Sequence record: NC_023688.1 | DNA length: 64,000 nt | Strand: one strand, 5' to 3' | In this document: in pieces, positions 12,477 through 15,973 of the stretch | How positions within the stretch are numbered: position 1 is the first letter of the stretch | Layout: each line of letters starts with the position of its first letter | Translations under genes and position numbers: made by a program | The notes under the pieces: generated by a model | The model's input: the letters and a program-made list of their open reading frames with translations, nothing else | The model's database searches: none | What the model was told of the DNA's origin: nothing

Positions 12477-12991
12477 ATGATTTGAATATGCAACAACTAT
12501 TAGACGTCACTGGGATACCGGGTATGAGTTTTGATGATACCATGCCCGTTGTATATGAGCCGACTGTCTTAGAACCGGTAGATTCACACCCAGCCGAACG
12601 TTCTAAAGATCTTGAGTCTGATTATGATCTGGTTCGTCAGACTTTGAACTTTCAACAACAAATGTTGATGGCAATGGGTAAGATCGCATTAGAGAATGCG
12701 AAAAACTCCGAGAGTCCAAAACACGTTGATGCCTTTGTTAACTTAATGAATAGCATGACCAACGTGTCTAAAGAAATTTTAAAAGTCCATAAAGAAATGG
12801 GCGCTATTACGAACGAGACAACAAAGACTAAAGACGCACCACAACAAGCTGCACCGTCAATGAATATTGAACATGCTACTGTTTTTGTTGGCACACCAGC
12901 CGAATTGATGGCACAAGAAGGTACTCAATCTGAGGCATTATCTCGTTCAAAACAAGTTATTGAAGGAGAATCAGATGTCGTTGATGCCTGA
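12473..12991 (+). CDS. gp16: Terminase small subunit gp16
   Basis: [13 protein letters not shown]...[16 protein letters not shown]...[10 protein letters not shown]. Confidence 0.93.
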
Positions 12992-14204
12992 GGAAATGAA
13001 ACCAGTTGAACAACTGGAAAGAAAAGTTGTAAGTTTTGATATGCCACTCGATGTATTTGGCGAAGATGAAGCTGTTTACACTCAACAGCCGGATGGTGTT
13101 CTTGTAATTAAGGACGAACGTGGCGAGAAAGTTGTTCGTACTCTGAAAGAATGCGTTTATTACAAGAGTCAACATGATGATCGCTGGTATCCGGAGTCGT
13201 ATGACATTTATTCCGAGTTGAAGCGTATTCAGAAAATGAATCTACAAGGGAAAGACCCGAGCGACTTTAGAACATTTAAAGATCGCTTTAATAAAAGAAC
13301 TCGATATCTAGGCATTCCTAATCTGAAACGCGCAAACGTCCCGACTAAATGGACTCGCGAAATGGTTGAAGAATGGAAACGTTGTCGTGATGATATCGTT
13401 TATTTCGCCGAGACTTATTGCTCCATTATTCATATTGACTGGGGTGTAATTAAGGTTCAATTGCGCGACTATCAAAAAGATATGTTGCGTATTATGGCAA
13501 CCGAGCGCATGAGCATTCATAACTTGCCTCGTCAGTTGGGCAAAACAACTGCGACCGCTATTTTCTTGACTCACTTTGTTGTGTTCAACGAAGCAAAAGC
13601 TGTTGGTGTTCTTGCTCACAAGGGTGATATGTCAAAAGAAGTTCTGGAACGTACTAAACAGTCCATTGAACTGCTGCCAGACTTTCTACAGCCCGGTATT
13701 GTTGAGTGGAACAAGGGTAACATCGAACTCGAAAACGGATGCTCCATAGGCGCTTACGCAAGCTCTCCCGACGCTGTTCGTGGTAACTCTTTCGCACTGA
13801 TCTATCTTGACGAAGCGGCGTTTATTGAAAACTTTGATGATACATGGAAAGCAATTCTACCAGTTATTTCGTCTGGGCGTAAATCTCGTATTATTCTGAC
13901 GTCAACTCCGAACGGGATTAATCACTGGTATGATCTGTGGGAAGTATCAATTAACTCTGATAAAGGGTTTAAACCATACACCACGACTTGGATTACCGTT
14001 AAAGAACGTCTGTATAACGGCGCTGATATGTATGATGATGGGTTTGAATGGTCAACCAAACAAATTAACTCGTCAAGTATCGAAGCGTTTCAACAAGAAC
14101 ACTGCTTGATTGGAACAACTCGCGTCGATGTTATGATTGATAATCAAGAAAAGAATATGAGTGTGGAGGAACTGTGGAATACATACCGTTCACGTATCGC
14201 GTAA
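12975..14204 (+). CDS. gp17: Terminase large subunit gp17, N-half (ATPase, 376 aa) fused to split-intein N fragment (33 aa)
   Basis: AAGGAG RBS; [15 protein letters not shown] Walker [10 protein letters not shown] Walker B, TSTPNG; ends [13 protein letters not shown]... Confidence 0.95.
14103..14201 (+). mobile_element. Split intein N fragment (IntN, 33 aa, atypically short)
   Basis: C1-LIGTTRV block A followed by SVEELW N2 motif, then a stop; resembles AceL-TerL IntN as recalled. Confidence 0.9.
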
Positions 14205-15973
14205 CAAACAAGACCGAGAATAAGCATTATTATGGTGTGAAATACGCAATTAAAGACGCAAATCCATCGTGTTTGTGGTCTACATATTTCACAAGTAGCA
14301 AAGCAGTTCATGATTTAATCGAGAAGTACGGCAAGGATGACTTTGACGTTGAAATACGAAAGACATTCAAAACTGCCGAGTCGGCTTTGATCTGTGAGTC
14401 CAAAGTAAATAAAAGAGTTTACAAATGGGATAACTATCTCAATGATTCATACTTTGATGTTGAGAAGCAGAAAGTGAAACATAATGGGATGAAAGGCAAA
14501 AAACACACAGAGGAAACGATCAATAAAATCGTTTCTACTAGAAAAGCAAACAATAGTTATTCTGTGAAACGCTGTGGACTCTCGGAAGAAACCAAAAGGA
14601 AACAATCTATGAACAGAAAAGGGAAAACCCCGAGTCGTAACTGTATTAAAATCGACACTCAACATCTTGGCAAAATGTATTACGAAAACATCAACACATA
14701 CGAATTGAAACGTTGTCCGAGAAGTGGAATGATGTCTCCTCCGGAGAGACAATTCAGTAACTGGTATCAGGAAACTCATGCTAAAGATTGCACCAAAATA
14801 GCGGTGCACAATGCGCTTATCAAATGTCTGAAACGAAATAGCTTTGCTCCTCTTCCGACGTACAGCGAGAGTTCTATTAAGATCAAAACTCCTTCTGGAT
14901 ATAGAGCTATCGGCAGCATTGAAAAGGTAAGTCATGACCGATACATCAAGTTTGAAATGAAAAATGGACTCACACTTGAGACAAGCGATAAACACATTTT
15001 CGTTCTTGTTCATCCAGTTACCAAGATTCAGTATTGTTTGTATGCCGAAGATGTTGAGATTGGTATGCTTGTTCCTTTGGACGGTCAAGATATTGAAATA
15101 ATCAATAAAGATGTAATAAACGAGCGCATTGATTTATACGACATTCGGGACGTTGATGGTGGCAACATTTTCTATGCCAACGGAATTCTAACACATAATT
15201 GCTGCCGTTTCATGGGAACGTCTGGTACTCTTATCAACGGATTTAAATTGTCTAAGATGGGGTGGACCGAGGTTATTCCAGATGATTGTTTCTATCAAAT
15301 TGAGAGACCAATCGAAGGACACAAATATGTTGCAACCGTTGACCCTGCCGAAGGTCGTGGACAAGATTATAGCACCATGCAAATAATCGATGTTACCGTT
15401 TATCCATATAAACAGGTTGCGGTGTATCATTCGAACAAGATTTCACCACTGCTATTGCCAAGCGTTATTATGAGATATTGTATGGAATATAATAATGCGT
15501 GGGTTTATATAGAGCTAAATAGTATAGGTAACATGGTGGCTAAGTCTTTGTTTATTGATCTTGAATATGAAAACGTAATCGTTGACTCAAGTAAAGATCT
15601 CGGTATGAAACAGACTAAATCAACCAAAGCTGTTGGATGTTCAACTCTAAAAGACTTAATCGAAAAAGATAAGTTGATTGTGAAACACAAAGGCACAATT
15701 CAAGAGTTTAGAACGTTTGTAGAAAAGGGTGTTAGTTGGGCTGCACAAGACGGTTTTCATGACGATTTGGTTATGTCGCTGTGTATATTTGCGTATCTGA
15801 CAACACAAGAGCGATTCGGTGATTTTATTGATGCTTCGAGAAACGTCGGTGCCGACGTATTCCAAGCAGAAATGGAAGAAATGCTCGATGACTTCATGAT
15901 TGGTGCCATTATTGATGACGGCATAAATACATATGAGGTAGACAACCGAGATATGACTATTTTCGGATCATAA
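14174..15973 (+). CDS. gp17: GIY-YIG endonuclease - IntC - gp17 C-half (nuclease domain) fusion
   Basis: GTG start 4 nt after GGAGG; FTYRVTN...YYGVKY...YFTSSK GIY-YIG and [13 protein letters not shown]3-like motifs; intein motifs; then [31 protein letters not shown]. Confidence 0.92.
14873..15199 (+). mobile_element. Split intein C fragment splicing region (~109 aa; start approximate)
   Basis: IKIKTPSGY, block B ETSDKHIF, block [15 protein letters not shown], block G ILTHN followed by Cys+1 at 15200. Confidence 0.92.

Follow-up and report, generated by a model that had tools for sequence, protein, structure and literature searches.

Gene 17 of Aeromonas phage PX29 raises the question of how an essential phage enzyme, the large terminase (TerL), can be produced from a gene that is broken into two overlapping reading frames, the second of which opens with a homing endonuclease sequence. 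The window, that is, the whole stretch of DNA that was analysed (64,000 nt of sequence record NC_023688.1), derives from this phage and is 100% identical to GU396103.1. The feature is already described at the level of annotation: since 2010 the GenBank entries have stated that 17A "contains putative N-intein" and that 17B "contains putative GIY-YIG endonuclease and C-intein". A literature search found no published paper discussing the PX29 split terminase intein. RefSeq labels 17B "homing endonuclease" alone, and in the records of AsFcp_1, _2 and _4 (three separately deposited PX29-like isolate genomes) it is a misc_feature; under such labels an essential terminase half is easily misread as a pseudogene.

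Table 1. Features of the gene 17 locus, with positions given in the window.
Feature	Coordinates	Strand	Size or evidence
ORF 17A: TerL N-extein (ATPase half), IntN, stop	12975..14204	+	409 aa; Pfam Terminase_6N
N-extein, 376 aa, C-terminal end QQEH	12975..14102	+	gap-free alignment to Aeh1 gp17
IntN, 33 aa, Cys1 at 14103, then stop	14103..14201	+	
Shine-Dalgarno GGAGG (14165-14169) and 17B GTG start (14174-14176)	14165..14176	+	
ORF 17B: GIY-YIG endonuclease, IntC, TerL C-extein	14174..15973	+	599 aa
GIY-YIG catalytic domain, ~residues 1-100, FTY...YYG motifs	14174..14473	+	PF19835, PHROG 314, free-standing homologues
Endonuclease linker: NUMOD3 (residues 108-145) and helical C-terminal module (~residues 160-225)	14474..14848	+	
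Endonuclease/IntC fusion joint	14849..14863	+	alignment to free-standing relatives
IntC core, ~112 aa (block B SxxH = SDKH; block F; block G ILTHN)	14864..15199	+	
C-extein, 257 aa, from Cys+1: TerL nuclease half and stop	15200..15973	+	Terminase_6C

The coding sequence is distributed over two frames (Table 1). 17A runs from an ATG (GenBank places the start at 12984) to a TAA at 14202-14204 and matches Terminase_6N at 1e-39; the earlier note on this DNA had read it as the ATPase half followed by a 33-aa IntN and a stop, and the ORF, the Pfam match and the alignment to Aeh1 gp17 bear this out. 17B is read in the -1 frame with respect to 17A, which it overlaps by 31 nt (14174-14204). Its Shine-Dalgarno sequence and its start, four nt 3' of GGAGG, both sit inside the IntN codons V-E-E-L-W; the start is GTG in PX29 and ATG or TTG at the equivalent site in relatives. 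The last 10 IntN codons, which overlap 17B, gave a pS of 0.13 and a pN of 0.27 in the 17A frame, and their sequence indicates that they evolve under 17B-frame constraint. Cys+1 is 17B residue 343, directly after ILTHN, and residues 388-557 match Terminase_6C at 8e-23. The -1 frame, the overlap, the GTG after GGAGG and the in-frame fusion of ∼230 aa of GIY-YIG/NUMOD3-like sequence to IntC, Cys+1 and the nuclease half had all been claimed earlier, and they hold on the sequence and on Pfam matches to SegE_GIY-YIG and Terminase_6C, with NUMOD3 (19.0 bits) slightly below its cut-off of 20.4 in PX29 and at 25 bits in the relative P0005.

Excision of the intein in silico joins the 376-aa N-extein to the 257-aa C-extein, and the predicted product has the length of 633 aa that had been foreseen. 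It aligns without gaps to the intein-less gp17 of Aeh1 (633 aa), with 577/633 residues identical (91%); at the junction the exteins read QQEH-C/CRFMG in PX29 versus QQEH-L/CRFMG in Aeh1. Cys1, block B SxxH, block F, the terminal HN and Cys+1 were invariant in an alignment of 9 lineages. The IntC core found its best PDB sequence match in CatC (6DSL_B, residues 15-113; phmmer E 5.4e-9), and its predicted structure, with AlphaFold pLDDT of 80-90 over 17B residues 236-342, ranked the same chain first in Foldseek (TMt 0.69), all 32 of the 32 PDB matches at E≤0.001 being Hint-fold domains, either of inteins or of other kinds (Hedgehog autoprocessing, BIL). The 43-aa N-junction/IntN peptide was too short a query and matched no PDB sequence, and a word-indexed protein search limited to IntC returned PX29 itself only. 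A sequence search recovered 266 relatives at E≤1e-3; of the 150 listed, many were proteins of 360-420 aa with an N-terminal IntC, and those whose sequence was examined were IntC-TerC.

Based on these sequence and fold matches, the PX29 gp17 intein is assigned to class 1 and to the atypically split TerL family (GOS-TerL, AceL-TerL and the consensus "Cat", PDB 6DSL), in support of the short-IntN assignment made earlier. The comparison with the AceL/GOS family was made through the Cat consensus (6DSL) and the class description. Members and PX29 have in common a T4-type large terminase as host, a short IntN (15-37 aa in the class, 33 aa in PX29) with a long IntC, a split past the first helix (the "S2" position) and a Cys-dependent class 1 chemistry. 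Unlike them, the PX29 IntC has no initiator of its own and is preceded in the same polypeptide by a 230-aa GIY-YIG/NUMOD3 endonuclease.

We propose, with a probability of roughly 80%, that PX29 gene 17 is a fractured gene restored by trans-splicing, with the endonuclease fused 3' to IntC. In the proposed mechanism, a class 1 atypically split TerL intein separates the ATPase half of the terminase from its nuclease half, and a SegE-type GIY-YIG homing endonuclease gene would have inserted in the intein just past the first helix. This insert, with its 5' end, provides the stop that ends 17A after the 33-aa IntN, the Shine-Dalgarno sequence and start codon within VEELW open 17B, and the 3' end of the endonuclease, joined in frame to IntC, gives one polypeptide of endonuclease, IntC and the TerL C-half. 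One late mRNA is probably translated into both ORFs; no T4-type late promoter (TATAAATA) was found near 17A/17B. The IntN of 17A would then dock on the IntC core of 17B and trans-splicing would link QQEH to CCRFMG, yielding the 633-aa terminase and a two-chain by-product in which IntN is bound to a 342-aa endonuclease-IntC.

The genomes of PX29 and the AsFcp phages, all of them cultured, each contain a single TerL nuclease-domain locus, and both halves of the gene must therefore be functional. This agrees with the earlier view that trans-splicing would be needed for an essential enzyme, the locus being the only terL copy; because the phage is viable with it, we infer that protein splicing occurs. 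The best surviving alternative is that the halves never ligate and that the intein fragments do no more than dock non-covalently, in the manner of the interaction domains, derived from a mobile element, of the split Aeh1 NrdA. Splicing in PX29 is, after all, predicted from sequence, and unligated split phage enzymes can work: in the Aeh1 nrdA system (Edgell lab, PMC3045599), a homing endonuclease gene (the HNH endonuclease mobE) likewise splits a gene that is essential to a T4-like Aeromonas phage, and the protein regains its function after translation, as predicted for PX29. The Aeh1 halves, however, are reported to associate non-covalently, with no intein and no ligation, unlike the model proposed here. 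Furthermore, Cys1, SxxH, the penultimate His, Asn and Cys+1 do not vary among lineages with saturated synonymous sites, and the consensus intein of the TerL family is a characterised split intein (PDB 6DSL). We consider the absence of ligation improbable.

A second alternative holds that a short IntC-TerC protein, translated from an internal start, acts as the C-half and that the long endonuclease-IntC frame is incidental. The IntC-TerC of free-standing relatives does have its own ATG, and L006, a metagenomic relative with the fused layout, has a Met about 20 residues ahead of IntC. This Met is nevertheless not conserved (Ile in PX29, Gly in L016), the PX29 region has no ATG and its in-frame GTG has no Shine-Dalgarno sequence, and the alignment revealed no conserved internal start codon ahead of IntC. 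In L016 and L018, where only a remnant of the endonuclease persists, the remnant stays in frame from the original endonuclease start, as is expected only if that start drives translation of the C-half. An internal start is thus very unlikely, and we infer that 17B takes part in splicing as the full-length fusion and not as a shorter product.

Two further explanations would turn the split intein into a contiguous one. Programmed -1 ribosomal frameshifting in the overlap, giving a contiguous precursor that splices in cis, is compatible with the -1 position of 17B and with both frames being open across 14144-14204, yet an X XXY YYZ slippery heptamer occurs in 0 of 9 lineages, the predicted downstream structures are neither stable nor conserved (z-scores about 0), and a conserved Shine-Dalgarno sequence and start lie exactly at the start site of the free-standing endonuclease; we give it hardly any credence. 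A sequencing or assembly indel in 14144-14204 that masks a contiguous, cis-splicing intein with a GIY-YIG domain, the error against which the earlier note had warned, can practically be dismissed: the 17B frame is open from 14144 only, 30 nt 5' of its start, and one base gained or lost in this 61-nt stretch would join the frames, but AsFcp_1, _2 and _4 differ from PX29 by 4 substitutions (one of them within the overlap) and 0 indels over 12975-15973, and L006/L007, L016/L017, L019 and three phages with a free-standing endonuclease share the stop, overlap and start at 40-65% protein divergence.

The fused endonuclease of the trans-splicing model is homologous over its full length to free-standing endonucleases. 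Residues 2-77 of 17B match SegE_GIY-YIG (PF19835) at 35 bits versus a cut-off of 25, and the endonuclease matches the PHROG 314 homing endonuclease at 6e-17. The FTY/YYG, W..YFTS and E.KVN motifs are kept in an alignment of 6 endonuclease homologues, among which the Tyr, Glu and Asn motif columns of the GIY-YIG domain are conserved, with no column assigned to the catalytic Arg. AlphaFold, run on a 6-row alignment, modelled the GIY-YIG core at low confidence (pLDDT about 45) and residues 160-225 at pLDDT 80-90; this helical C-terminal module presumably binds DNA. The endonuclease core has diverged less than IntC between PX29 and L006 (pN 0.22 vs 0.28). Divergence is given as pN and pS because the saturated synonymous sites bar a proper dN/dS. 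Since the essential C-half needs an open frame, the open frame alone is no proof of endonuclease function, and the catalytic core can be lost from the fused form, being deleted in L016 and L018. In the proposed model the endonuclease would be active and mobilise the element. In PX29 itself a W74C change lies beside the presumed catalytic Glu, a position that is Trp in AsFcp and all other homologues, and with this change and the GTG start the PX29 endonuclease may be impaired.

Endonuclease and IntC are read through without an intervening stop in PX29, L006, L016 and L018. L006/L007 share the PX29 stop, 31-nt overlap, Shine-Dalgarno sequence and start at 61% identity over endonuclease-IntC and saturated synonymous sites; the same signals are found in the divergent metagenomic L016/L017. 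A homologous, free-standing endonuclease occupies the equivalent site in Yersinia phage MHG19, Providencia phage PSTRCR_127, Serratia phage 92A1 and the metagenome contig L019. There it starts at the same position as the PX29 fused form, within a 31-32-nt overlap, and its stop overlaps the IntC start codon at the site of the PX29 fusion joint. In other lineages the fused endonuclease is partly deleted or there is none. An IMG/VR scan returned only PX29, and a metagenome scan with the fusion-joint alignment matched only the L006 contig. Most relatives have an endonuclease with its own stop. The PX29 layout is real, a rare form of an arrangement already known, and represents a 3'-fused derivative of the published fractured-gene layout.

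That layout was described by Dassa et al. 2009 (PMC2677866), who reported, for a gp17-like terminase, a locus broken at an unusual point, with a 122-aa IntC and a free-standing endonuclease. In their fractured genes, as in PX29, a split intein that contains a GIY-YIG-type endonuclease gene interrupts the gene of an essential phage enzyme; in both, reading frames overlap where the parts meet, and stop and start alike come from the invading element. The difference lies at the 3' boundary, where the Dassa loci have an endonuclease stop and a separate IntC start, whereas in PX29 this boundary is lost and endonuclease and IntC form one polypeptide. At that time GIY-YIG domains were not known inside inteins, and in-frame capture of the endonuclease appeared only as the hypothetical steps IIa/IIIa (PMC2677866); the 3' fusion in PX29 corresponds to half of step IIIa. 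Hairpins sequestering the ribosome binding site, as in Dassa et al., were not supported, with z-scores near 0 for the majority of lineages and of -1.8 for a single one.

Canonical bifunctional inteins also combine a Hint splicing domain with a homing endonuclease domain in the excised product (predicted for PX29). In these, LAGLIDADG or HNH domains lie between blocks B and F of one chain, whereas the PX29 GIY-YIG domain lies past the first helix and the product is of two chains. Nor is PX29 a contiguous endonuclease-containing intein, as its IntN is on a separate ORF and its endonuclease ahead of block B.

With respect to origin, the idea that the endonuclease start codon opens the C-half is supported. 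A homologous endonuclease with an equivalent start where it is free-standing backs the claim that a GIY-YIG insertion split the intein. The proposed insertion can be kept; its place needs correction, from between N2 and block B to after N1 and the first helix, and the sequences support a GIY-YIG gene insertion just past the first intein helix as the event that would have created the split. Less of the claim that PX29 is the intermediate explaining the atypical split can be kept: the explanatory intermediate is the free-standing-endonuclease form of Dassa et al. 2009, and PX29 represents a further step, the 3' fusion, be it an intermediate or a side branch.

More tentatively, the excised two-chain product (33-aa IntN and 342-aa GIY-YIG-IntC) could be an active homing endonuclease and the fused state the route to the endonuclease-less, short-IntN TerL split inteins that protein engineering employs, a proposal about which we are more doubtful than confident. 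The fused endonuclease would have been deleted stepwise from its 5' end with the start codon kept, from PX29/L006 through L016 and L018 to an EniLVp02-like form. In the extein tree a single clade holds free-standing, remnant-fused and endonuclease-less states; the element and IntC trees are polytomies and do not polarise free-standing versus fused. If the proposal is true, this would be, within the searchable literature, the first natural intein with a GIY-YIG domain in its polypeptide, and at a non-canonical position. Accounts of how inteins acquire endonucleases and how naturally split inteins arise rest largely on models, and short-IntN split inteins are valued for protein semisynthesis. 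The states observed at this one terminase site include a contiguous mini-intein, the fused GIY-YIG of PX29, a core-deleted fusion, a remnant fusion and an endonuclease-less split intein. The host ranges of PX29 and Aeh1 overlap. Cultured phages (MHG19, 92A1, PSTRCR_127, PX29, EniLVp02, Aeh1) carry the endonuclease free-standing or fused, the split intein with no endonuclease, or the intein-less allele, which makes the model testable at the bench.

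The gp17 gene of Aeromonas phage PX29, encoding the large terminase (TerL), occupies window positions 12975-15973 (100% identical to GU396103.1) and is divided between two ORFs, 17A and 17B. 17A ends in ...AFQQEH followed by a 33-residue N-terminal intein fragment (IntN) and a TAA stop; the 17B start codon has GGAGG four bases upstream. Removal of the element leaves 376 + 257 = 633 aa, which align without gaps to the 633-aa gp17 of the intein-less Aeromonas phage Aeh1 (577/633 identical; junction QQEH-CCRFMG in PX29, QQEH-LCRFMG in Aeh1). Since PX29 is a cultured phage in which the TerL nuclease domain is encoded at one locus only, 17A and 17B together must yield a working terminase. 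The earlier note had described a terminase broken by a split intein whose C-half begins with a GIY-YIG endonuclease, and the ORF, domain and Aeh1 comparisons bore out all of its statements on the sequence of the locus.

Features of the split gp17 locus in PX29 (nucleotide positions in the window; residue positions in the 17B product)
Feature	Position	Description
gp16	12473-12991	small terminase; flank of the locus
17A	12975-14204	TerL ATPase half; Terminase_6N, 1e-39
17B	GTG start 14174	-1 frame; 31-nt overlap with 17A
17B GIY-YIG domain	residues 2-77	SegE-type; 35 bits (cut-off 25)
17B NUMOD3	residues 108-145	19.0 bits (cut-off 20.4)
17B helical module		follows NUMOD3
17B Hint C-fragment		follows helical module; ends ILTHN, then Cys+1
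17B Terminase_6C		nuclease domain; follows Cys+1
gp18	15984-18023	tail sheath; other flank of the locus

An indel error splitting what is really one reading frame, the alternative that the earlier note had held open, was ruled out. Three separately deposited PX29-like isolate genomes (AsFcp_1, _2 and _4) differed from PX29 over the 3 kb by four substitutions, one of them within the 31-nt overlap, and by no indel. The same layout was found in two divergent metagenomic lineages, each represented by two samples (loci L006/L007 and L016/L017), with a 33-aa IntN, TAA stop, 31-nt overlap and a Shine-Dalgarno (SD) sequence 5' of the start in both. The 17B product of L006/L007 (P0002) starts with ATG and is 61% identical to that of PX29 in the part comprising the endonuclease and the C-terminal intein fragment (IntC); the counterpart in L016/L017 is P0005.

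The intein itself could be assigned to a family. The IntC core matched PDB 6DSL_B ('Consensus engineered intein CatC') by sequence search (E 5.4e-9), and the same entry was the top structural match of an AlphaFold model that was confident over residues 160-342; all 32 structural matches with E<=0.001 were inteins or other Hint-fold domains. Cat represents the consensus of the atypically split TerL inteins. According to the literature, natural AceL-TerL and GOS-TerL are split after the first helix, and IntN lengths across the class are 15-37 aa. Cys1, block B (SDKH), block F, the terminal His-Asn and Cys+1 were kept in all nine aligned lineages. The register of the insertion (window 14103 and 15200) shifts by one codon among lineages at equal spliced length, being QEH^C...HN^C(C/A)xFxG in PX29, L006 and Yersinia phage MHG19 and QEHx^C...HN^CxFxG in L016, L018, L019 and Vibrio phage EniLVp02 (^, boundary of the element).

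No slippery heptamer was present in the 17A/17B overlap of any lineage examined, no RNA structure around the 17B start was significant or conserved, and no internal late promoter was present. The IntN codons for (V/L)EEL(W/Y) contain the conserved SD and start codon of 17B. In the simplest reading, 17B would be initiated independently on the same late transcript as 17A, and the 33-aa IntN would then trans-splice with the IntC core, which would release the 633-aa terminase and leave IntN bound to endonuclease-IntC as a two-chain by-product. Protein splicing is a prediction for PX29 gp17, as is activity of the endonuclease.

Phage genomes were searched by tblastn with the endonuclease part and with the IntC part, and both queries pointed to one set of three cultured phages: MHG19, Providencia phage PSTRCR_127 and Serratia phage 92A1. 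All three carry three ORFs at this site: TerL-N with a 37-aa IntN; a free-standing GIY-YIG gene (236-237 aa) whose start lies in a 32-nt overlap and coincides in position with that of 17B; and IntC-TerC, with a 14-nt overlap between its ATG and the endonuclease stop. The same layout occurs on metagenome contig L019, whose endonuclease shows 48% full-length identity to the PX29 one. Dassa et al. 2009 (PMC2677866) called this arrangement a 'fractured gene' and described a gp17-like terminase locus, with an IntC of 122 aa, as 'fractured at an unusual point'. PX29 differs solely in lacking the 3' endonuclease boundary (stop and separate IntC start), so that endonuclease and IntC form one polypeptide. 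We suggest that fusion may be selectively advantageous; in the free-standing layout the essential C-half would be translated via re-initiation at the endonuclease stop, and fusion would abolish this dependence and tie endonuclease and C-half at 1:1.

Fused forms are rare: the search for the same architecture proposed in the earlier note recovered four lineages among 5.8 billion and 1.84 billion protein clusters, and scanning metagenomes for further ones added none. The fused endonuclease of L016 lacks the catalytic core (residues about 21-110) with the original start, overlap and frame kept, and that of L018 is reduced to a 76-aa remnant of its C-terminal module, still joined to IntC. EniLVp02 has no endonuclease and its IntC ORF starts within the same 32-nt overlap, and some metagenomic TerL proteins (P0036, P0063) contain a contiguous mini-intein. 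In the element tree, otherwise a polytomy, free-standing endonucleases fell to either side of the midpoint root, which makes a free-standing ancestor the parsimonious one. The extein tree placed L019 (free-standing), L018 (remnant-fused) and EniLVp02 (endonuclease-less) in one well-supported clade; either the states interconvert fast or the element moves horizontally. The series PX29/L006, L016, L018 would fit a decay of fused forms towards short-IntN split inteins that lack an endonuclease.

Between PX29 and L006, synonymous sites were saturated and non-synonymous divergence was 0.22 in the GIY-YIG core, 0.33 in the DNA-binding part, 0.28 in IntC and 0.13 in the extein; in this lineage the endonuclease is therefore constrained at least as much as the intein. 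The last ten IntN codons (pS 0.13, pN 0.27) are constrained by the 17B frame and not by their own, which fits an IntN whose functional part has about 23-25 residues. At window 14395 (17B codon 74), PX29 has TGT (Cys) and the three AsFcp genomes TGG (Trp), the residue that all six other full-length homologues of the endonuclease share; it directly precedes the conserved, presumed catalytic Glu (ALI[W/C]ES). Cys74 may have weakened the PX29 copy.

The class to which this locus belongs, fractured genes and atypically split TerL inteins, is already known. Inteins with internal GIY-YIG endonucleases were not known to Dassa et al. 2009 (PMC2677866), where in-frame endonuclease capture appears only as hypothetical steps IIa/IIIa; what is new here is the in-frame endonuclease-IntC fusion, realizing half of such a step. 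Our literature search found no paper on the PX29 arrangement or on any GIY-YIG fused to an intein fragment, and a 2025 preprint on actinophage inteins reports other non-canonical endonuclease arrangements, the PX29 type not among them. No new principle is involved, and the record's submitters had already recognized the parts of the locus: the 2010 GenBank record states that 17A 'contains putative N-intein' and 17B 'contains putative GIY-YIG endonuclease and C-intein'. The finding is solid and neat; intein specialists can use it, and culturable phages allow it to be tested. Labelling is inconsistent among the PX29, AsFcp_2 and AsFcp_4 records (L001, L002, L004): GenBank has 17B as a terminase with GIY-YIG endonuclease and C-intein, RefSeq names it 'homing endonuclease', and in the AsFcp records, which are flagged UNVERIFIED, it appears only as a misc_feature. 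The endonuclease ORF of MHG19, PSTRCR_127 and 92A1 is a 'hypothetical protein', as is one terminase half in the latter two.

Other interruptions were seen in terminase genes. In L006 (ENA ERZ1755817 NODE_254, 1967-2278) and L007, an insert of ~310 nt lies inside Walker A of the gp17 N-half (...NLPR ^ QLGKTT) and is absent from PX29; it matched the whole of group I intron model RF00028 at 37.3 bits (E 5.8e-8), short of the gathering score of 50, with T ending the upstream exon, G ending the insert and no ORF within. L018 (Logan SRR27204706 contig 107673, 129-5353) has a T4-like terL divided into five ORFs by what read as three short-IntN split inteins. At its Walker A site IntN is fused in frame to a ~370-aa extension with a faint MUG113-type match, a mirror image of PX29, and at its IYVDE^C site a DUF723/HNH-type endonuclease is a free-standing ORF. 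In Delftia phage PhiW-14 (GQ357915; L012:2440-3310), the unannotated 500 nt 5' of annotated gp17 encode a TerL N-fragment ending ...ARQMGK^CVQGDTEIKL... before stops, and a Hint C-fragment (...YYTNGVASHN^TTTVAAF) opens the annotated gp17; the annotation seems to have missed a short-IntN split intein at Walker A here. Related Hint sequences occur at a different, more N-terminal position in the terminases of two Ackermannviridae, Vibrio phage VP-1 (L015:819-4161) and Vibrio phage Kuja (L013:2506-4752). That of Kuja is contiguous, within a 748-aa TerL; in VP-1 the Hint match spans the gap between two annotated ORFs, perhaps a split intein, perhaps a problem of annotation or a frameshift.
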